From assembly GCA_965637545.1 (NCBI GenBank), contig OZ281498.1, forward strand, positions 22,382,001-22,446,000: 64,000 nucleotides of DNA, given 5' to 3'. This DNA comes from Phallusia mammillata. Lineage: Eukaryota. The position numbers and the translations under genes are program-made. Below the pieces are notes generated by a model. It was not told where the DNA came from. It searched no databases and saw nothing but the letters and a program-made list of their open reading frames with translations. Positions 36,352 through 48,953 of this stretch are shown one piece after another. Positions within the stretch are counted from its first letter, which is position 1; each line of letters begins with the position of its first letter.

Positions 36352-37119
36352 TTGTGGATTTGTAAGTGAAGCACGTGGCCATCCTTCCATAAAAGCACAC
36401 TAACCCACAACGCTCAACACACAAATGATTAATAACTGCAATTGAGTTCATCCATGCAATAAAAGACGGAACAATTAATAAAGTATCGCTTCCAGTGCAA
36501 ACTATGTTTTGATTATTTTAGTTTAGAAATATATATTTATTTTGTAAAAACAATTCCCTCTACAACTGGGCTGTAAACTGGCTTCGTTATTTTTTTGTTT
36601 TTATGTTAAGATATATCACTACGCATCCATTAGCAAGCGGATTAAACTTAGTTTAACTTTACTCAGTTCAAAGTAATTTTATCACCAATTTGTCCCAGGC
36701 TAAAAGATAATATTAGAAATTCGTCACCATATTGTATTTGATCCGAAATCAAATCTACTGAATTCAAATTGTTCAAGAGGTCAAGATGCCGTAAAGAGAA
36801 TGAAATGTTTTCCACATTTAAAAAACATAACTTATTTTCACACTTTCTTGGTTTGGCAGTTTATCCGATTTTATGTAAATGCTTTGCCCCACTGTAGTTC
36901 TGTAAAAAAATTTGACGTCACTTCTGCTACACCAAAATCACCAAACCTGATTAATCATGGGTGCTTATCAACAAAATAAAAAAGAGTAATTTATAATCAA
37001 AACTGAGTCATATACACGCGGCGCCACATTGATATTTGCAGCTTTTAGAAATATTATTTTCATCTGATTTTGTTGCGTAAAACTTTCATACATATGTGTA
37101 CGTTTTGTCTAGCTGGAAA

Positions 37120-38111
37120 ATGGCAGTTGTTATTCTTATGTCTTTGTATTTTTTGAAGTTCGCGTTAGTGTCTTGCCAGAATTACTATACAGGTAAGGTT
37201 AGGCACGTAGTAATTCCACTGAAAAACAACACTAAGATTGACTATACCATTTCAGCAAAGTACGAAAATCTTGGCTGTTGGAAAGATGTGGAAGGTTTGC
37301 CAGCGATCGCTGAAGCCAGAAACAAATTAAACGTTTTGGATGGTGATTACAAAACTCGAGAGCTGGCAATAGTAAAGTGTGCGAGAGAAGCTGTTCACAG
37401 TTCGTACGAAGTATTTGCACTGCAAGTGAGTACTACTTTGACGAATATTCATTAAAACTTTCAAACATGAAATAAGTGGCAAACAATTTTATATCTGTTG
37501 TCACGCAGTTTGTTTTATTTTCAGGACAATGGGAAATGTATGACGTCATGTGACGCAATACACAGGTATTCCATGTTCGGTGAATCCCACAATTGCAGAA
37601 CAAACGGCAGGGGAGGGTTGAACGCCAATCAAGTTTACAAACTACGAACAACTGCAACCGGTATGATGTCGAAATCGCGTAATAAGCCAGAATGTGTTGT
37701 TTGGATGACTTTAGTTACATTCTTGTATAGTTTTTCAATATTTAAACAACATGTTAACAAATCGATCAGTGGATATGTATTCTTATAATTGCAGTAACTC
37801 TGGATGACCTTGGCTGCTGGAACTTCACCAGACCGCGATCAATCCCACGTTTGGAGGAATCTCACCCTTTATTGACTGGTAATTACAGAAATAGAAAAGA
37901 GGCCATCGCAAAATGCGCCCAAGTTGTCTACGAGCGAGATTATGAGGTGCTTGCCCTTGAAGATGGTGGGAAATGCTTTAGCTCGGCAGACGCAAGTGAA
38001 ACTTACAACGTCCAAGGGGCGAGTGATGCATGCGCCGAAGATGGAAAGGGTGAAGAATCGGTGATTCAGGTTTACCGAATCCGAATCGTTGAAGAAGTTT
38101 CGTTTCATTAA
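37120..38111 (+). CDS. Secreted protein with two tandem WSC-like domains, array copy 1 (231 aa)
   Basis: Exons 37120-37192, 37256-37425, 37525-37660 and 37795-38111 total 696 nt. Signal peptide MAVVILMSLYFLKFALVSC. Each domain reads LGCW..AIxKC..LQ/EDxGKC..C..G.G..QVY. Confidence 0.85.
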
Positions 38112-39125
38112 AGTTGAAACAATGCTACTAATGACAATTGAATGTCACCCGTGTTATTCTTTATATGCTACATTGGAAAACCGTTTTCATAACACGTTGT
38201 TTCACATTAACTGACTTGAAACGAATTCTGCTTTAGTTGAAACACCGTATTGTTGCCTTTAAAACTCGCTAAATGTGCGTGTCTCTTGTGCTGCATTTTA
38301 CACAAACAATTATAAACCATAGAACGAGTCGCTAAATAATTAACAGCACATTAAATAAAAAACATGTGGCCAAACGACGGTTCTCTAAAAACTTAGCGAT
38401 CATTTTATTTGCCATGACTTCATTACTGTAAATATCAAGTTGAGCTTCAAACAAAGAGTTAATTTTCACCCTAAAATGGTGTAATATTGTTCCCAAAAAC
38501 GTGAATGTAAAGCGTTTTAAAGCAGTTTACTCTCAGATGGTTAATAAGGGGCATCAGCTATGCTTCGAAACCCAACTAATTTGCGCACATAGCTTAGGTA
38601 ATCTATAGCCTGGTACATTTAGTAGCTGTATCTGCCGCCGTAAAGTTTGTTTTCTTTGCCTAAAAACAAAACCGTCCGGTTGGCCTAAACACAACCCATT
38701 ACGCTTTAATGAAGTGCAGCATCGATTTTGAAATTTGACAACTTAAACAAATAAGTTAGCCTTCGTTTAATTAGCTGGAAAATGTTTGTTTTCCGTTAAT
38801 CTATTAACCAATGGTAATCTATACGAAATGATTTAATATAAAGCGATGACTGAGCAAAAAATCACAGCCAGTATTTGTGCGTAAAACATGACGATGTCGT
38901 TTTTGGTTTTACAAAAAAAAAAACGATTTTAGGTTACAACAGGTCACCCAACTATGATTCATGCCAGTTAATCATTCATCTAGACGTCACAAATATGAAC
39001 CCAAAATGAGTTTACATTTTAGAACCAAACCGCACGAAAATATTTCCATCATCCCGTTGTTATTAGCAGTTAAAGTCATTGACATTCAACTCGCCCTGAT
39101 TTTCTAAAAAAATGCTACAAAGTTG

Positions 39126-39177
39126 AGCTGCAAACAGGGAACACTGTTTCGACCTATAATGTCTCATCAGTGCAGCT
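39126..39177 (-). ncRNA. Type I hammerhead ribozyme motif with an intact core
   Basis: Minus strand: AGCTGCA-CTGATGA-GAC-ATTATAG-GTC-GAAAC-AG-TGTTCC-CT-GTT-TGCAGCT. It has a 7-bp stem I, 3-bp stem II, 4-bp stem III and a GUU cleavage triplet (predicted cut between 39133 and 39132). Confidence 0.8.
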
Positions 39178-39420
39178 GGTCGAAACAGTCTGCACTGATG
39201 ATTTTCTGCTACCAAGTTGTTTTTACGAAACCCGAGTATTTGCACTGAAAATGCGCGTCAATTTAGTTTGATATATATAGAAATAACTGTTTAAGTTTGA
39301 TTTATGATCGTCTCAAATTCACTGATATGAAAAGTTAATAGAAACATTAATAAAATTCTATTGTCCAGTTTATTATGTTTGGTCTTATGGAAAATATACG
39401 ACATCATATAACGCAATACA

Positions 39421-39517
39421 GAGCTATTCTAGATTCGGGGAATACCAAAACTTCAAGAAAAACGTAAGTGGACGGTTAAACGCAAATGAAGTTTACAAAC
39501 TACGTTCAACTGCAACC
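39421..39517 (+). pseudogene. Degenerate exon-3 remnant of the WSC-like array
   Basis: AACGCAAATGAAGTTTACAAACTACGTTCAACTGCAACC matches the 3' end of exon 3 (NANQVYKLRTTAT). The upstream part carries indels. Confidence 0.75.
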
Positions 39518-40000
39518 TGCGCTTTGACGTGGTTTTATACCAAAGTTGTTCTCGGCTTTTGTGTAAGCTAGGCAAAACTTACTGAAAATCGGGTCTTATA
39601 ATGAATGCATTATTATTAATTGTTTGGCCACGTATATTTCTTTGTTATTCACCAAACCTAACCAATACTACTTATGCATTAACACAAACATCGTCATATT
39701 TTTGTACATTTTCCTAATGCAAACAAAAGGTTACTCTAAAGCCGCCGGTTTATTTCCAGTAACAAAAATGCATCAATTTTTGTGTGGATTTTTTGCTGTT
39801 TCGCAAGGTCATTATGGGGTGACCAAATCTGAATAATGTTGATTACTCACTAACACTGTGTTGTAAAGGTGAATCAAATTTACATCCCCGTTATATAACT
39901 AAAACTAAGAACAAAAACATGCGTTATATCATTGCGTTTGTTGTACATGTCATTGAAAATAGTTATAATTTAGTTTTACGTTCAGGTGCCGAGTTTTAAC

Positions 40001-40921
40001 ATGTCAGCCGATATGTTCATGATTCTGTGGTTTATTGGTTTTACGTTTGTTGGTGGTCAGAATTATTATGCAGGTGAGGATAAGAAAGCCTGTAGGAACA
40101 TTGCTCGAGTACCAACTCTGATTTAAATTCATCTTTTGTGCAGCAAAGTACGAAAATCTTTGCTGTTGGAAAGATGTGGAAGGTTTGCCAGCGATCGCTG
40201 AAGCCAGAAACAAATCAAATGTTTTGGATGGTGATTACAAAACTCGAGAGCTGGCAATAGTAAAGTGTGCGAGAGAAGCTGCTCACAGTTCGTATGAAGT
40301 ATTTGCACTGCAAGTACATGCTACTTTGACGAATATTCTTGTTCAAAACATGGCAAAAACTTTACATCTTTTGTCACGCCGTTTGTTTTGTTTTCAGGAC
40401 AGTGGGAAATGTATGACGTCATGTGACGCAATACACAGGTATTCAATGTTCGGGGAATCCCTAAACTGTAGTGAAAACGGAAGGGGAGGGTTGAATGCTA
40501 ATCAAGTTTACAAACTACGAACTGCCACAACAGGTATGACTTCAATATTGCCTAAAGTTCATTTTCAGAATGTTTATTAAACATTTTAAAACTAGTAAAC
40601 CTGGACGATCTTGGGTGCTGGCGTGACAGTGAGGAACGTACAATCCCGTTATTGGATGGAACTCACCCTTTGTTGATGGATTGGTTTAGAGATCGTAAAG
40701 ATGCCATCGCAAAATGCGTCCAGGTTGCCTACGAATTAGGTTATGATGTCATCGGTTTGCAAGAAGGGGGGCAGTGCATTAGTTCGGCAAACGCAAATCT
40801 AACTTACATCAATTACAATCCAGCAAGTGACGGTTGCGAGGAACATGGAAAGGGTGGTATATGGCGAATACAGTTCTACCGAATGCGCGCCGTTGAGAAA
40901 AAGCAGTTTGATCACTGTTAA
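40001..40921 (+). CDS. Secreted double WSC-like protein, array copy 2 (234 aa)
   Basis: Exons 40001-40073, 40144-40313, 40398-40533 and 40596-40921 total 705 nt. Signal MSADMFMILWFIGFTFVGG. Exon structure is the same as copy 1. Confidence 0.85.
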
Positions 40922-42288
40922 ATTTCTGCTACTCTCGTGGAACACGACTTTACTGTATTTTAAAGTGTGGGCTACAATTGGTCGTTTGTATTTCCAGAAA
41001 CCTAATCATAATATAACACTGTTGTCTAAAGTTAAGTGATCCGTTTGTATTTTTGGTCGTTACTCCGTAGTAAGCATTGTATACTACTCAGCGCAAGTTG
41101 TTAATACCCAAAAATATTCCCTCCAAAATGCCCCACACGCAAATTCGTATCTTCTCATCATCAGGAAACTGGCTTTCCTTTCCAAAACAGATTTAACATC
41201 AGTCTTTGTTTTCTATTTGATAAAACTATGCGTCAAACGCAACTGCAGCATCCATTGTATTTGTTCATTACCTGTAATAATTGCTGTTTACAAGTGCACC
41301 TTGTTTACGCAAGCCTTTCAAATTCTTCAAAAACTAGCACATAGCCTACTTTTTTGTGTGACGCTTACCGAAGGCATCTGTTTGCTTGAGATGTGAATCA
41401 CTCAGACACAATCAGTGTGGACTTTAGTATGGTGATTGTCAAAGGATTTTAACGAGTTCGTTTTTACCCTCTTTCGAATAGATATAACAAACGATGATTT
41501 AGTGTACAGTCGACCCTTTATGTTATGTGTTAAATACAATTGAAGCGTTTCAACATTTTGTGCACTAACATCATACATGTCAACTACATGTGAAACGCTT
41601 TAGATATGACTTGAGATTTCAGGGTCTTTATCGAAATAAAAGCGAACTGAAAAGGACTACAAATAATACATTTGCTAGTAGAGCGTTATTAAGTTTATAG
41701 AACTTGTACAAAAACTACAAAACTGTACAAAACGTAAGGCCAGGTTAGCAGAAAGTTTGCATTCCACGACCAATAAAACTTTTTGTTTAATCCTCGGTTC
41801 ACTCAAGGCGTTAAACTGAAGCTTTGTGGATTTGGGCTTAAAAATTGATTTTTTCCCTTACTTTGAAGCCGCCACTACAGGTTTGTTACCATTTAATTTG
41901 TTATCTGAATTAACCACAAAATATAATGGCATATATAAGACAATTGACTAGCTTTACCAAACCTTACATAACAATATAATGCATTGACGTTTGTGGGGCA
42001 AAAAAAGTTAGCTAAAAGGTTACAAATAAATTCACAATGTCATCAGCCGGTCACAACAGCACCATATTATGATTAGTGTTAGTTATTTATCAATACGTTG
42101 TCACATAGGTGAACCCATTTCAAATTCGTATTTCAAATATTCGTATTTTCATCAAAAAAAAAACTGAAACAAAAATTATGCGTCATTTTTATTATCATGC
42201 AGGTTATGCAACAGTGGTTTGTATTTGCACTTGTGGTATAAAATGCCAACAAATTTAGGGTCTTTGTTCACAACGCGAACCCAACAAA

Positions 42289-43204
42289 ATGGCGGTTGTT
42301 ATGTTAATGATATTGTTTTTTTTTTGAGATTTTGCTTGTGTCGTGTCAGACTTACTACACGGGTAAGATTGAGACAGTCTGTATCAACTTAACAAGTCTA
42401 TTTCCAATAACTGTTTTTCAGCAAAGTACGAAAATCTTGGTTGTTGGAAAGATGTGGAAAGTTTGCCAGCGATTGCTGAAGCCAGAAACATATTAAATGT
42501 TTTGGATGGCGATTACAAAACTCGAGAGCTGGCCATAGTAAAGTGTGCGAGAGAAGCTGCTTACAGTTCGTATGAAGTATTTGCACTGCAAGTGAGTACT
42601 ACTTTGACGAATATTCTTCAAAACATGAACAAAACATGGCAAAAACTTTACATCTTTTATCACGCAGTTTGTTTTGTTTCCAGGACGATGGGAAGTGTAT
42701 GACGTCATGTGACGCAATACACAGGTATTCCATGTTCGGGGAATCCCATAATTGTAGTGAAAACGGAAGAGGAGGGTTGAATGCCAATCAAGTTTACAAA
42801 CTACGAACAACCGCAACTGGTATGATGTCAATATTGCTTAAAGTTCATTTTCAAAATATTTATTAAACATTTTAAAACTAGTAAACCTGGACGATCTTGG
42901 GTGCTGGCGTGACACTCCGGACCGTGCAATCCCGTTATTGGATGGAACTCACCCTTTGTTGATGGATTTCTACGGAAGTAGGAAAGATGCTATTGCAAAA
43001 TGCGTCCAGGTTGCTTACGAATTAGGTTATGACGTCATCGCTTTGCAAGATGGCGGAGAGTGCTTCAGTTCGGCAAACGCAAATGAAACTTACAACATTT
43101 ACGGGCCAAATAACCAATGCGAGGAACATGGAAAGGGTGGTACGTGGTCATTACAGGTCTACCGAATGCGCGTAGTTGAGAAAAAGCAGTTTGATCACAG
43201 TTAA
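42289..43204 (+). CDS. Secreted double WSC-like protein, array copy 3 (1-nt frameshift in exon 1 as assembled; 233 aa if corrected)
   Basis: Exons 42289-42362, 42422-42591, 42684-42819 and 42882-43204. The T10 run at 42316-42325 creates TGA at 42325-42327, whereas T9 restores a 24-codon exon matching copy 1. Confidence 0.75.
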
Positions 43205-44661
43205 ATTTAAATTTTTGCTACTCCCGAAGAACACGACTGTTGGCTTCAGTTGATTTAATTTAATGAAACTTGATCACAATGTAAAAAAAACTTTTGTTTA
43301 AAGCTGTGTGATGCGTTTGTATTTTCTGTTGTTAAGCACTGTATACTACTCAACACAATTTTCTTTAATATACCAGAATGCTTAAAGATATTAGCATATT
43401 CGAGCAAGTTTCGAAGGCCCATCTCTTTGCCTCTGGTGTATCTACACGTGTTTGTTACAAGTGATGAAATAATAAATTAAGTAATTTGAAAAAAAACCTT
43501 AAAATTTCCCCATAGGCAAATTCGTACCCTCTCACTATCAGAAAAATCATTCAAACACGATTGTATGTGGACTTTAATATGGCAATTGACAAAGGAGTTT
43601 AACGCGTTCGTTTTTACCCTCTGTCGAATAGATATAACAATCAATAATTTAGTGTACAATCGACCATTCATGTTATGTGTTAAATACAATTAAAGCGTTT
43701 CAACATTTTGTGCACCAACATCATACATGTCAATTACATGTGAAACGCTTTAGATATGACTTGAGATTTCAGGGTCTTTATCGAAATTAAAGCGAACTGA
43801 ATAGGACTACAAATAATACATTTGCTAGTAGAGCGTTATTAGGTTTATAGAACTTGTACAAAAACTACAAAACTGTAAAAAGTTTGCATTCCAGGGCCAA
43901 TAAAACTTTTTGTTTAATCCTCGGTTTCACTCGAGGCGGTAAATAGAAGAAAATATATTTTTTCCACACAATCCAAAATTATAGTGTGGGCAAAGTGTCT
44001 AAATCGCTACGGAAAGGCTTTAGCGTTTTTGATTCTCATTAGATACACACATTTGATGAATTCGAAAAAAGAAAGTTTAAAAGTAGCATGGCGACACTTT
44101 TGCCCAAAAATCAAATTAAACCAAAAAAGTAGACAATTCACAAATTCGTAATTTTGAAGCAGTAATTTTCATTATCAATGAAATTCAAGGAATAGTTAAA
44201 ACAAAGTATCTTTACAACACAACATTTTTGAAGCATCTGAACACAGTCAAATCGAACGTGGCAAGCGTAACATGAAAATTCATGTTTTTCGAGATATCCA
44301 AATCTTAACCATGATTGTTCATCATTTTTTTTTCGAGCGTCTACCTGGACACATGCTCAGAGACATTCCAGAGATTTCGAATCAGGGTTGTTTCCCCTAG
44401 CCTTTCACAAACCAATGCGTGACTTCAAGGCAGCAGTTGCCTCGAGTGGGGAGCCGGTTTAGTCGACAGCCACTCGACCCGCGACAGGTTGTACTGGGCT
44501 ACGTGGTACCAGTAGCAGGTATAAGCCTGACCTGACAGGTCAGAGAGGGATGCGATCAGAAGAAAGAACCTTGTGTCCATCAAAGCGAGGGGACGCCAAG
44601 TCCTGAGCATTGAATAATTTGATTGAACCCTGATTGAACCCAAAATTCCAAAAGCCCAAAA

Positions 44662-45290
44662 GAATCCCAAAATTGTGGAACAAATGGTACTGGAGAGTTG
44701 AATGCTAATCAAGTTTACAAACTACGTTCAATTGCAACGGGTAAGTTAACGCTGTTCATATAAACTAACTTGTGTTGTTGATCTAAGATAGGTTTCATGT
44801 TAAGCTGCGAAACGCTTGTAGTAACGGTGTAGCTGCAGCGCGTCTACCATTTCTCCACCAATTGTACCCTCAACTTTGTCGCGCTTTTTAACTTCTGAAC
44901 GTTGCGCAGGTATTTCCGGCTCGGTGAATATTTTAGCGCAATTGTGCTGCTACGAGTTTGCCCGGCGAAATAAACTCAACTCATACTGTAGCTTTACGGT
45001 ATTAACACAATATAGTAAGGAACAGTAAAAATGTTCTTAACTTATTCGCAGTTACCTTCGATGACCTTTGTTGTTGGAAAGATAATATGCAACGTGCAAT
45101 CGATATGAGGCTGGATGGAACTGACCCTTTATTGACAGGGTGGTACCAAGATCGAAAAAATGCCTTTGCAAAATGCACCCAGGTTGCTTACGGGTTGGGT
45201 TTTGATGTAATTGCTTTACAAGATGGAGGAGAATGCTTCAGCGCGCCAAACGCCAATGAGTCATATAATATCCACGGACCAAGTGATTTT
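44662..45290 (+). pseudogene. Broken array copy 4
   Basis: Only the 3' half of exon 3 (ESQNCGTNGTGELNANQVYKLRSIAT, to 44740) and exon 4 from 45052 remain. Exon 4 is cut after HGPSDF by MITE-like sequence, before the last Cys. I found no exons 1-2. Confidence 0.8.
44815..44983 (+). mobile_element. Retroposon 3' end, (AACTC)n tail family
   Basis: Ends GGCGAAATAAACTCAACTCA and is the reverse-complement match to 17988-18163. Confidence 0.7.
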
Positions 45291-45447
45291 TGGGGTGCAA
45301 GAAACTGTTACTAGGGGGTGCGGGGATGCTTGTATAAAAGTTAAATTACAATGGTTTTGTTATTAAAGCTATATTACAGAAGGGGGTGCGAAAATTGGGT
45401 GGTGATTTGAAAGGGGTGCAGCAAGGAAAAAAGGTTAAGAACAACTG
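45290..45447. mobile_element. Truncated hAT MITE (right end only)
   Basis: GGGGTGC subterminal motifs and right TIR AAGGTTAAGAACAACTG (reverse complement CAGTTGTTCTTAACCTT). The left TIR is missing. Confidence 0.65.
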
Positions 45448-46040
45448 TGCTAGAGGTTAAATTATTTGTTATTCGAGTTGAACCATACTCTAAATGTGTC
45501 ATCAGCCATTTGAGCCTGTTCCGGACATTCATGTTTAAATATACCAACATGTTATCAACAAACCTGTTGTAAACTAGCTCACTAAAACGTTTGAACAGGT
45601 ATTTAGTTCATTTTAAAAATCATCGAAGGGTTTACCCAGCAGTTTCGGTTTGTGTCACATAACAGATAGACACAATTGGTCAACTCGCTTCCTACAGCTA
45701 GGATAAGCTTTGGTTTGCTGAAGAACTGCAAACAAAAGTGACAGAGATAAAACAACGCCGTGATGCAATTGTAAAACCGTTTTAGCGGGTGTCTGAGCTG
45801 AGTATGTTTCATTTTTAGGATCGCCCCACATTACCAACACAACAATCTATTGTTAAAAATCTAACTAGAACAACATTTCATAGATGGTAGGCCTATTAGT
45901 ATTAAGAAGAAGAAACACACTGCCAATATATTAGTGTAATTGAAGTATCAAATTTTTGGGTAAAACAGTGACAACATTGCCTATGTTTGTGATATCTTTT
46001 AATTATTGTTTTGATGGGTGATGATTTTACTCATTTGTAA

Positions 46041-48953
46041 TGTTACCGTAATTTTTGCGTTATGTTTCACCTTGTTTCTCGTTAGCCACCACTAGTGTAC
46101 TGTCTTGTTTTGTCGGTTTATTAAGTTTGTTTTATGTGTATGTGCTTATTTTCCTGAAACGGAAGTTATTACCTTAATTTCACGATGTCTTTTTCATGTT
46201 TTTCACTTAATCGCATTCACATCTTTTTGTTACGTTCACGTTTATCTTTTAACTGTTCGATTGCTTTCCTGTGCATTGTTTTCAATTATACGGGAATTTA
46301 ACCCACGGCACACCTTGTGTTCACTGCACCTTGCTTTAACTCCTCCCCTGCCGTTGCCTTTCGCAGCATTCCGGCTACAATCCCAGGTGTTACATTCTAA
46401 AGTAAGCCGCTAGGGCGATGATAATTGACCGGTGCGTTTCGACCACGTGACTTGTGAGTTTCCTTGTTTCTTTTACTAGTTTTGTCGCGATCCCTTTTTC
46501 GAGTGTTTTGCAGTCCTTTTGCGGGCCACGTGTTGTTGCAAAAAGTTCTTCCCCAGCTGTCGTACTGTTAACTTGTGTTCGTTTTTGTGCAGCGCAGTGA
46601 CTTTGCCAATATTGTAGAATTTTATATAGTGTTTTTAAATAAAGACAGCAGTGCTCGAACGCGTCTAAACTAGGGTTTTTCGTGACTAGCCGTTAGTGCA
46701 GTGTTCGAGGGCTTTTGGCAACCATTAAATTGGGCGCCACACAAATTGGCGAGCACGCCAGGAACTTGCAGTCACGCAGGCGCGTTCATAGCACAGGGGA
46801 AGGGGTCTGGTTTTTGTTGGTTTTATTATGTCTTTTAATTTGAGTATGTCGCCTCCGTATTTTAAATGCGGTGACAATTTTAATACTTTTTTAATGCTTT
46901 TTAACTCGTATTGCGCAAGTGTCAAGGCTACAGACGACGTCAAACGCCATTTGTTCTTAACCCACGTCGATAAAGACTATTTGTGGGACCTTAGCAAAGG
47001 AACAGGCGACGTGTACCAATTATCTTTTGAAGAACTTGTGACAAAGGCAAAAGCCCGGGGAAACAGCCATGCGAATTTAGCAACATTGCGTAATGAACTC
47101 CTAGATCGTGCACAAGGGCCTCAGGAAGGAGGGCGTGCGTTCGTTTATGCCTTGCAGTCACTTGGTGAGCGCGCGTATCCCGCCGAGGTGGAAGCTGCGA
47201 TTAAAAATGAGGTCTTGTTTTTGGCTTTGTTGCGCGGCCTTCGTGACCGCCAGCTTGCGGCCTCTTTAGGGCGTGAAATTGTTCAACGCGACTTTTGCAC
47301 CGCAGCCAGCAGAGTTGCCGATATGGACGCCCGACCCCATATCCTTCCAATGACGACGCTTCAAGGCCCAACGGAAAGGCAAGAAGTAAAGGAGATGCTG
47401 TCCAAGATGGGCGAACACTTACAGCAGTCCGTCTGTATGCTTCGATGTTAACTTAACGAGGTACGGGCAGAAGTTGCAAGGATATGCTATCAAGATCATC
47501 GTCTGACGGCATATGACAGGCACCGTCCGGCCTTTCGTCCAGCGAGTAAGTTAGTGCGAAAATGTTTTATTTGTAACGCTGAAGGACATTTGGCGAGAAA
47601 TTGCAAAGCGAATACACGTAGGCAGCAGCCGTCTATACATTCCAGGGACGCACCACAAGATTTCAGTAGAACCAGAGTGGTGAGGAACGTTCAGTGGAGT
47701 GGTCAGGAACGTTCAAAACACGGAGACTCTCCACACCAACCGGGCGTTCGTGTAGACCGGCTCATTACCCCACAAAAGATGCGACATGATGCGATTTCGG
47801 CTCTACATAACCCACCTCACGGCGGTGGACACCTTGGAGTGGCCAAAACGCGTTCCAAAGTTGGCGATCGGCACTGTTGGCCAGGGTGGCCTGTGGAAGT
47901 TGAAGCCTACGTTCGGAGCTGTACAAAATGTGAAAGAATTAAGAAGTTCAATGCTCGGCCCAGGGCGCCTTCAGGCGAACTAAAGCCGATGGAACGCTTG
48001 GAAATTGATATCCTGGAACCTTTACCTCTGTCGGTGGCTGACAGTACACGGTGTACCCGATATATAAATGTTGCGACCCAAGACGAGGCCCCAACATTAC
48101 AGCGGCAGCCACGAGATGGCGTAAATCTCCCTTTCGAAGGTAGAAACTTTGACTGTATCGCTAACCGTCTCAGGGAAAATCGGCGGCGGCCGAAGTACTT
48201 TGCAGATCTGTAACGGGTTGCACAGGAGTGCAACGATATAGGGTGGGGGGTGTGTTACCGTAATTTTTGCGTTATGTTTCACCTTGTTTCTCGTTAGCCA
48301 CCACTAGTGTACTGTCTTGTTTTGTCGGTTTATTAAGTTTGTTTTATGTGTATGTGCTTATTTTCCTGAAACGGAAGTTATTACCTTAATTTCACGATGT
48401 CTTTTTCATGTTTTTCACTTAATCGCATTCACATCTTTTTGTTACGTTCACGTTTATCTTTTAACTGTTCGATTGCTTTCCTGTGCATTGTTTTCAATTA
48501 TACGGGAATTTAACCCACGGCACACCTTGTGTTCACTGCACCTTGCTTTAACTCCTCCCCTGCCGTTGCCTTTCGCAGCATTCCGGCTACAATCCCAGGT
48601 GTTACATTCTAAAGTAAGCCGCTAGGGCGATGATAATTGACCGGTGCGTTTCGACCACGTGACTTGTGAGTTTCCTTGTTTCTTTTACTAGTTTTGTCGC
48701 GATCCCTTTTTCGAGTGTTTTGCAGTCCTTTTGCGGGCCACGTGTTGTTGCAAAAAGTTCTTCCCCAGCTGTCGTACTGTTAACTTGTGTTCGTTTTTGT
48801 GCAGCGCAGTGACTTTGCCAATATTGTAGAATTTTATATAGTGTTTTTAAATAAAGACAGCAGTGCTCGAACGCGTCTAAACTAGGGTTTTTCGTGACTA
48901 GCCGTTAGTGCAGTGTTCGAGGGCTTTTGGCAACCATTAAATTGGGCGCCACA
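46041..48953 (+). mobile_element. Non-autonomous, internally deleted Ty3/Gypsy LTR retrotransposon
   Basis: TG...CA LTRs at 46041-46741 and 48253-48953 (701 bp each, no difference found by eye) and a 4-bp TSD GTAA. PBS TGGCGAGCACGCCAGGA (46747-46763) resembles the complement of the tRNA-Arg(ACG) 3' end. A G-rich PPT precedes the 3' LTR. Confidence 0.96.
46828..48213 (+). pseudogene. gag fused to an integrase zinc-finger fragment, with an in-frame TAA at 47449-47451
   Basis: ORFs 46828-47451 and 47554-48213 share a frame. They carry the CCHC knuckle CFICNAEGHLARNC, then LHNPPHGGGHLG...CTKC...LEIDIL (integrase HHCC and start of the core). No protease, RT or RNase H motifs are present. Confidence 0.85.

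Follow-up and report, generated by a model that had tools for sequence, protein, structure and literature searches.

A tandem array of short four-exon genes lies on the + strand of a 64,000-nucleotide stretch of the Phallusia mammillata genome (C5:22382001-22446000 of the 240-Mb assembly; hereafter the window) and was read over window positions 36500-46000. The array comprises three genes (c1, c2 and c3), one exon-3 remnant and one broken copy. In each gene, exon 1 encodes the start codon and a hydrophobic N-terminus, exons 2 and 3 encode a first domain (D1), and exon 4 encodes a second domain (D2). The D2 of the young pair c2 and c3 changes faster than D1, and sustained diversifying selection is not supported. 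The explanation that we favour, with moderate confidence, is that the array is a lineage-specific birth-and-death branch of the WSC family, in which the D2 of c2 and c3 has been under relaxed constraint or has undergone at most episodic change. An earlier note on this DNA had proposed a diversifying family of soluble recognition proteins with a constant D1 and a patch-variable D2.

Under the favoured explanation, each protein would carry two divergent four-cysteine WSC (PAN/apple-like) domains behind a signal peptide. The array would be shaped by tandem duplication and by exchange of segments between copies, through gene conversion or unequal recombination, and copies would decay through transposable-element insertion and small indels. 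D1 is clearly under purifying selection, and its exon 2-exon 3 block has undergone homogenisation across the three copies. At the same synonymous distance, the D2 of c2 and c3 has taken up about three times as many replacements as D1; most of them affect surface loops, and most arose in c2. This would reflect relaxed constraint or at most episodic change in one domain after duplication, and other young pairs of the family behave alike, with either domain affected. The proteins may be soluble and bivalent and bind glycans or other ligands outside the cell, as suggested by the fold and by the fungal lectin WSC3 (discussed below). In general, the locus looks like an ordinary young tandem family, with conversion, decay and a transiently raised ratio of nonsynonymous to synonymous divergence (dN/dS), and it opens no new question.

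Unequal change of D1 and D2 between c2 and c3

Nonsynonymous (dN) and synonymous (dS) divergence was obtained from Nei-Gojobori counts, and the domains were joined in local scripts for translation and codon counts. Between c2 and c3, 9 of 100 residues are changed in D1 (dS 0.20, dN 0.045, dN/dS 0.22), whereas D2 carries 24 substitutions and one gap in about 105 residues (dS 0.20, dN 0.151, dN/dS 0.75); the residue counts given in the earlier note are thus reproduced. D1 lies below neutrality (p=7e-4), and D2 as a whole is indistinguishable from it (p=0.32). The contrast between the two domains is significant by the Fisher test for residues (p=0.006) and for nonsynonymous and synonymous counts (p=0.02-0.05). 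Because dS is equal in D1 and D2, gene conversion cannot account for the asymmetry in this pair. The intron before exon 4 is near-identical, as previously described (intron 3, 57/62 positions, 92%), and intron 2 is 89% identical; both introns are no closer than a dS of 0.20 predicts.

In D2, residues are replaced behind GCW, ahead of the helix, within the hairpin that follows ALQ, ahead of the last Cys and within the final strand. The earlier statement that most changes fall into distinct patches therefore holds for the location of the replaced sites, which lie inside the named patches, but the clustering as such is weak. Adjacent replaced pairs number 10 compared to 6.1 expected (p=0.04), and the longest unchanged run is 20 (p=0.05).

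Probable mosaic ancestry or conversion of D1

Compared to c2 and c3, c1 has a dS of 0.22-0.28 in D1 and of 0.92-1.2 in D2, and in exon 2 the value falls to 0.06 (c1-c2). Exon 2 is 94-97% identical among the three genes, intron 1 is unalignable, and intron 2 is 81-89% identical. The odd-one-out copy shifts by segment: it is c2 in exon 1, c3 in exon 2 and c1 in exon 4, where the odd-one-out sites number 74 for c1 against 18 and 13. Since the segment-wise relationships disagree, the exon 2-exon 3 block has been exchanged or homogenised among the copies, and exon 4 of c1 is older. The D1 similarity of c1 to c2 and c3 comes with low synonymous divergence, and consequently the "constant" D1 in this comparison is a matter of mosaic ancestry or gene conversion.

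These data bear on a further explanation, in which D1 is constant purely through recent gene conversion and both domains are under equal selective constraint. The low D1 dS of c1 relative to its D2, the low exon 2 value and the conflicting segment relationships all agree with it. On the other hand, dN differs 3.3-fold between the domains of c2 and c3 at one and the same dS, and introns 2 and 3 of that pair give no sign of additional homogenisation. The explanation is thus very improbable for the array, and as the cause of D1 constancy between c2 and c3 it was rejected on the equal dS. The earlier note had named D1 identity with matching synonymous identity as a finding that would count against its own proposal; this is seen for c1 versus c2 and c3, where D1 dS is also low, and is not seen for c2 versus c3.

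The family elsewhere in the genome

A D2 query gave at least 93 genomic matches in clusters on five large contigs, about 50 of which cover most of the domain. The clusters lie on C5 (3.0, 10.75-10.82, 11.17-11.2 and 19.6-19.8 Mb) and C2 (8.0-8.7 Mb), and also on C3, C4 and C6, and the family in this genome amounts to more than 50 two-domain genes in tandem clusters. No genomic match is more than about 54% identical to c1-c3, which makes the array an isolated small branch.

From these matches, 27 distinct two-domain paralogues with the same exon layout (D1 in two exons, D2 in one) were extracted. In most pairwise comparisons of these genes, dN/dS falls within 0.15-0.7 for D1 and D2 alike, and the faster domain varies between pairs: in some pairs D1 is near 1 with D2 near 0.1, and in others the order is reversed. 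There is thus no family rule of a constant D1 and a variable D2, and the pattern that had been proposed for the array does not hold across the 27 paralogues, in which either domain can be the faster one. One paralogue, L052 (C5:3029818-3032976), is the mirror image of the c2/c3 pair, with a faster D1 (dN/dS about 1, weak profile score) and a conserved D2 (about 0.1). In addition, dS is often unequal between the two domains of one pair, which implies that mosaicism is common.

Identical or near-identical copies about 8-9 kb apart were also observed at C5:10803635-10803919 and C5:10812668-10812952 (L005 and L006), and a further close-copy cluster lies at C5:11167265, 11175209 and 11183049 (L007, L008 and L013). 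Such copies indicate very recent tandem duplication of larger units.

Selection on the loops of D2

Variable (loop) columns were defined from the homologues of other species only, independently of c2 and c3. In these columns of D2, c2 and c3 differ by 16-19 nonsynonymous and 2-3 synonymous changes (dN/dS 1.6-1.8, p=0.29 against 1), and in the core columns dN/dS is 0.4-0.5. When nine independent close pairs of the family were pooled, the loop columns gave 0.66 in D1 and 0.57 in D2, and the core columns gave 0.28 and 0.24, respectively; all of these values are significantly below 1. Values of dN/dS above 1 are confined to single young pairs, occur in either domain and rest on very small counts. 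The claim of diversification is therefore not upheld at any of the three levels, that is, the whole D2 of c2 and c3, its loops, or the pooled paralogue loops.

The changes are unevenly distributed between the two genes. In a simple relative-rate count with c1 or the broken copy as the reference, c2 has 9-10 unique residues and c3 has 4, and 9 sites of c2 deviate from the family majority, compared to 2 of c3. Two of the c2 changes, Gly to Asn and Val to Phe, hit positions that never vary in the family alignment of this genome and are at least 90% conserved across species, and D1 of c2 is also changed at a family-invariant residue (Gly to Cys). Such a loss resembles a loosening of constraint more than the tuning of a binding site, although it is not decisive. 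A micro-conversion check of the c2/c3 differences in D2 against c1 and the broken copy gave a mixed signal, with 18 differences that favour the c3 state, 13 that favour the c2 state, 6 split and 9 unresolved; in this comparison, there were no clean tracts and no local donor for the c2-unique codons.

Several observations weigh against relaxed constraint in D2. First, the loop dN/dS of c2 and c3 is compatible with positive selection. Second, about 12 D2 codons have two or three bases changed between c2 (40598-40918) and c3 (42884-43201), and about 6 would be expected by our own estimate; examples are AAT/GGG and GGT/CAA, as well as CGT/AGG for the same Arg. This excess could reflect strong rate differences among sites, multi-nucleotide mutation, an unsampled conversion donor or selection. 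Third, aromatic residues occur within the variable patches, much as yeast Wsc1 has functional clusters of them (PMC9024836). All copies carry such residues in the variable patch that precedes the helix (DWF, DFY, NY, WY), which is suggestive only.

The remaining observations of this kind come from other individuals and from RNA. The DNA data sets of three studies contain the stretch, and those of two other individuals contain only about half of the sampled words. In X3 and X4, the c1 haplotype differs from the reference by 66-71 letters over 37536-38380 (845 nt, about 8%), compared to 0.5-1.4% in the neighbouring DNA, and a 187-bp stretch downstream (38380-38568) is replaced by 17 letters. Exon 3 of this haplotype has 10 synonymous and 2 residue changes relative to the reference c1, and the haplotype is as distant from it as a paralogue would be. 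From the contigs of three individuals, this variant can be read as a deep haplotype, as a product of conversion or as a paralogue. Similarly, no X4 contig reaches 93% identity over exons 2-4 of c3 (42315-43114), and the DNA just upstream is covered; in this individual c3 may be lacking, as a presence/absence polymorphism, or may exist as a very divergent allele. Such polymorphism of c1 and c3 would also fit balancing selection. Finally, no expression was seen: runs X7-X21, most of them presumed RNA, contain almost none of the words of the locus, and the contigs of run X7 over the window touch repeats only and none of the genes. Since the tissues and stages of these runs are not known, this is absence of evidence only.

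Some of these points would suit the proposal that D2 is a recognition surface under diversifying selection and D1 a constant scaffold or effector, the array being a lectin-like set for innate immunity or allorecognition. The D1/D2 replacement contrast at equal dS in c2 and c3, the loop dN/dS in columns taken from other species, the weak clustering of replacements, the codons with several changes, the deeply divergent c1 haplotype and the missing or divergent c3 of one individual are all in line with it, and so is the size of a tandemly expanded family whose fold can be that of a lectin, as in Serendipita indica WSC3, which binds beta-1,3-glucan (PMC7816849). We nevertheless regard the proposal as unlikely. 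In no case is dN/dS significantly above 1, and for D2 as a whole it lies below 1; the asymmetry is no rule of the family, whose pooled loops (0.57-0.66) are significantly constrained; c2 has replaced family-invariant residues in a manner that resembles loss of constraint; and the RNA-labelled runs are nearly without words of the locus, with X7 contigs on repeats only. Relaxed constraint, or at most episodic change, in the D2 of c2 and c3 is thus retained as the favoured explanation.

A four-cysteine form of the WSC fold

In the search and fold steps, D1 was represented by its two exon pieces and D2 by exon 4. The D2 sequences of c1-c3 score 21-23 bits on Pfam WSC (PF01822; E=1e-4 to 4e-4), which is below the curated cut-off of 27.8 bits. 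The exon pieces of D1 gave no match to Pfam WSC, and WSC is the only family matched by the domains of the array. The assignment is strengthened by relatives: 135 of the 146 aligned domains match Pfam WSC and nothing else, and the D2 profile matches the proteins P0003, P0007, P0013 and P0024 at E values of 1e-66 to 1e-198 over stretches that themselves score 35-74 bits on WSC. An ESM Atlas feature search also points to WSC clusters.

The AlphaFold2 model of c2 D2 reached a predicted local distance difference test score (pLDDT) of 91.7 with a deep alignment, and 21 in-genome sequences alone gave 53. In a Foldseek search with the model, the top seven rows were all WSC-containing entries. VIA-align gave Z scores of 10.0-10.9 to 9n3u, 5fw* and 7pz2 (the WSC domains of Fusarium glyoxal oxidase, human Kremen1 and yeast Wsc1), compared to 4.2-5.6 for PAN/apple modules. 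The model thus has the fold of WSC, in which the long L5 loop is wrapped around a PAN/apple-like sheet and helix. Profile searches against PDB sequences returned nothing significant, and among known structures WSC was found by fold comparison only. The WSC-like character that had been noted from the sequence motifs is thus borne out by weak Pfam matches, transitive homology and the modelled fold, and the low cysteine content noted at the same time also stands: D2 has four invariant Cys residues (C7, C40, C60 and C80), and D1 has five, or six in c2. In the model, these four residues are placed in strand 1, the helix, the strand after it and the L5 loop.

Canonical WSC domains have eight Cys residues forming four disulfides, including an intra-L5 bridge, and a CGG motif (PMC9024836, PMC5014086). 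The domains of the array share with WSC (PF01822) the opening Y-x-x-x-G-C-x-x-D, the closing GG...VY and a five-stranded sheet against which one long helix packs. They differ in having only four invariant Cys residues, with K/E-G-G in place of CGG, and in lacking the second helix-sheet bridge and the intra-L5 bridge; in the model, the disulfide from beta1 to L5 and one helix-to-sheet disulfide appear to be kept. On the basis of the four Cys residues and the K/E-G-G motif, they are classed as divergent WSC-fold domains of a four-Cys clade and not as canonical WSC.

Relatives and possible function

A profile of 21 in-genome D2 sequences was searched against 1.84 billion cluster representatives and matched 2351 proteins at E<=1e-3, 1090 at E<=1e-10 and 101 at E<=1e-30. 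The four-Cys clade numbers thousands of proteins, spread over cnidarians, brachiopods, hemichordates, amphioxus and tunicates. The named members come from Styela clava, Clavelina lepadiformis, Branchiostoma, Ptychodera flava, Lingula anatina, Oculina and Actinostola, and all are called "uncharacterized". The WSC-repeat proteins of these marine invertebrates share the four-Cys type with the array, and two-domain forms of about 220-240 residues also exist among them; they differ in that many are giant repeat arrays or mosaics, and the nearest are about 40-54% identical to the array domains. Elsewhere, four-Cys WSC domains are combined with immunoglobulin, fibronectin type II, C-type lectin, VWA, F5/8C, SUEL, CUB and VWD domains. 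Two unannotated giant repeat proteins of the four-Cys type were noted in passing, P0001 (5602 residues, 38 matched stretches) and P0152 (5975 residues, Styela clava).

No paper on the function of the four-Cys clade was found, and a literature search joining the WSC domain with ascidians was empty. According to PMC7816849, which cites Wawra et al. 2019, Serendipita indica WSC3 is a secreted fungal lectin with three WSC domains that binds long beta-1,3-glucan. The array proteins resemble it in being small and probably secreted and in having tandem WSC-type domains only; unlike them, WSC3 is fungal, its domains are of the canonical eight-Cys form, and its ligand has been tested. Proteins, too, can be bound by WSC surfaces, an example being Kremen1-Dickkopf (PMC5014086), and in yeast Wsc1 the exposed aromatic clusters are essential (PMC9024836). 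A lectin role of the array proteins may be proposed by analogy with WSC3 and from the general annotation of WSC, and an immune or allorecognition role would be hypothetical.

In a wider form of this proposal, the array would belong to a large family, so far unrecognised, of four-Cys WSC lectins that are soluble and bivalent and serve a marine invertebrate as a diversified repertoire for pattern recognition or allorecognition. Episodic positive selection would produce new specificities in the loops of one domain shortly after every duplication, and balancing selection would keep deeply divergent haplotypes such as the c1 allele of X3 and X4. Snail FREPs, sea urchin Sp185/333 and protochordate VCBPs are secreted, are encoded in tandem arrays, vary in copy number and haplotype, and have patchy variation, as in the array. 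They differ from the array in their documented immune-cell expression and their significant evidence of diversification. We would give this wider proposal a slim chance. If the proteins are indeed soluble glycan binders, they would represent a new lectin class in the extracellular biology of invertebrates, and the array, with three genes and very different second domains, would be a convenient small test case.

Gene models and decayed copies

The genes c1 (37120-38111), c2 (40001-40921) and c3 (42289-43204) have four exons each, with splice sites and frames determined by script. All introns are GT-AG, in phases 1/0/1, and the layout is shared: exon 1 has 73 nt (74 in c3), exon 2 has 170 nt, exon 3 has 136 nt, and exon 4 has 317-326 nt and terminates in TAA. 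The frames of c1 (231 residues) and c2 (234 residues) are open throughout, and all of their splice sites are kept. The extra nucleotide in exon 1 of c3 is a T in a T10 run at about 42310-42319, which shifts the frame and places a stop inside the signal peptide. A contig from another individual (X3) has one base fewer at 42315, so that exon 1 of c3 is in frame, and the fault is therefore a polymorphism or an assembly error. In the earlier description of the array, the four-exon layout, the broken copy and the remnant are confirmed, and the count of three complete copies is reduced by the frameshift of c3 as assembled. The products of c1-c3 are probably soluble secreted proteins, as had been proposed: the predicted N-terminus is hydrophobic, and no later hydrophobic stretch follows. 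The features are listed in Table 1.

Table 1. Features of the array and its flanks, in window positions.
Feature	Position	Strand	Remarks
c1 exon 1	37120..37192	+	start codon, hydrophobic signal-peptide-like N-terminus, 73 nt, phase-1 donor
c1 exon 2	37256..37425	+	D1 first half (YENLGCWKD ... FALQ)
c1 exon 3	37525..37660	+	D1 second half (GKC..SC ... GRGG..NQVY)
c1 exon 4	37795..38111	+	D2 and stop codon; Pfam WSC E=1e-4
Exon-3-like remnant	39387..39517	+	isolated; 75-79% identical to exon 3 of c1-c3
c2 exon 1	40001..40073	+	signal-peptide-like N-terminus unlike those of c1 and c3
c2 exon 2	40144..40313	+	D1 first half; LCCW replaces family-invariant LGCW
c2 exon 3	40398..40533	+	D1 second half
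c2 exon 4	40596..40921	+	D2 and stop codon; sequence used for the structure model (pLDDT 91.7)
c3 exon 1	42289..42362	+	74 nt; frameshifted signal peptide in the reference assembly
c3 exon 2	42422..42591	+	D1 first half
c3 exon 3	42684..42819	+	D1 second half
c3 exon 4	42882..43204	+	D2 and stop codon
Two dispersed repeats	44316..44627	.	about 220 bp and about 85 bp; 45 genomic matches, 82-97% identical
Broken copy, exon-3-like	44662..44743	+	3' part including the donor site
Broken copy, exon-4-like	45052..45290	+	about 78 codons; homology stops before the last conserved Cys; carries LCCW
Short dispersed repeat	45292..45450	.	about 155 bp; hundreds of candidate genomic copies

The decayed copies were located by BLAST of each locus against the window. 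Dispersed repeats bound the broken copy on both edges: the two upstream repeats sit where its exons 1-2 and the 5' half of its exon 3 belong, and the repeat of about 155 bp begins exactly at the end of its exon-4 homology. With two decayed copies in the array, one of them edged by repeats, the earlier suggestion of birth and death is well founded.

It might also be considered that the whole array is decaying, with copies that are young or near pseudogenes and a D2 that diverges by neutral drift. Two of the five copies are fragments, the signal peptide of c3 is frameshifted in the reference, c2 has lost invariant residues in both domains, the dN/dS of 0.75 in D2 is not different from 1, and no RNA contigs lie over the genes. 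Decay on this scale seems quite unlikely, however, given that D1 of c2 and c3 is strongly constrained (dN/dS 0.22, p=7e-4), that c1 and c2 keep frames of 231-234 codons with all splice sites, that c3 is in frame in another individual and that D2 retains all four structural Cys residues. Birth and death of single copies, with relaxed or at most episodic change in the D2 of c2 and c3, is preferred.

Between c1 and c2, positions 39141-39180 are a very high-copy repeat, with a summed contig depth of about 79,000 in X1 compared to about 100 nearby and with many different flanks. Rfam (gathering thresholds) and tRNA scans of 36500-46500, which include this repeat, gave no match. In addition, LCCW in place of the family-invariant LGCW arose independently in D1 of c2 (40158-40166) and in D2 of the broken copy (45064-45072). 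As a result, D1 of c2 has a sixth Cys beside the extra Cys of the subfamily in GKC..SC, and a new disulfide involving this residue is conceivable.

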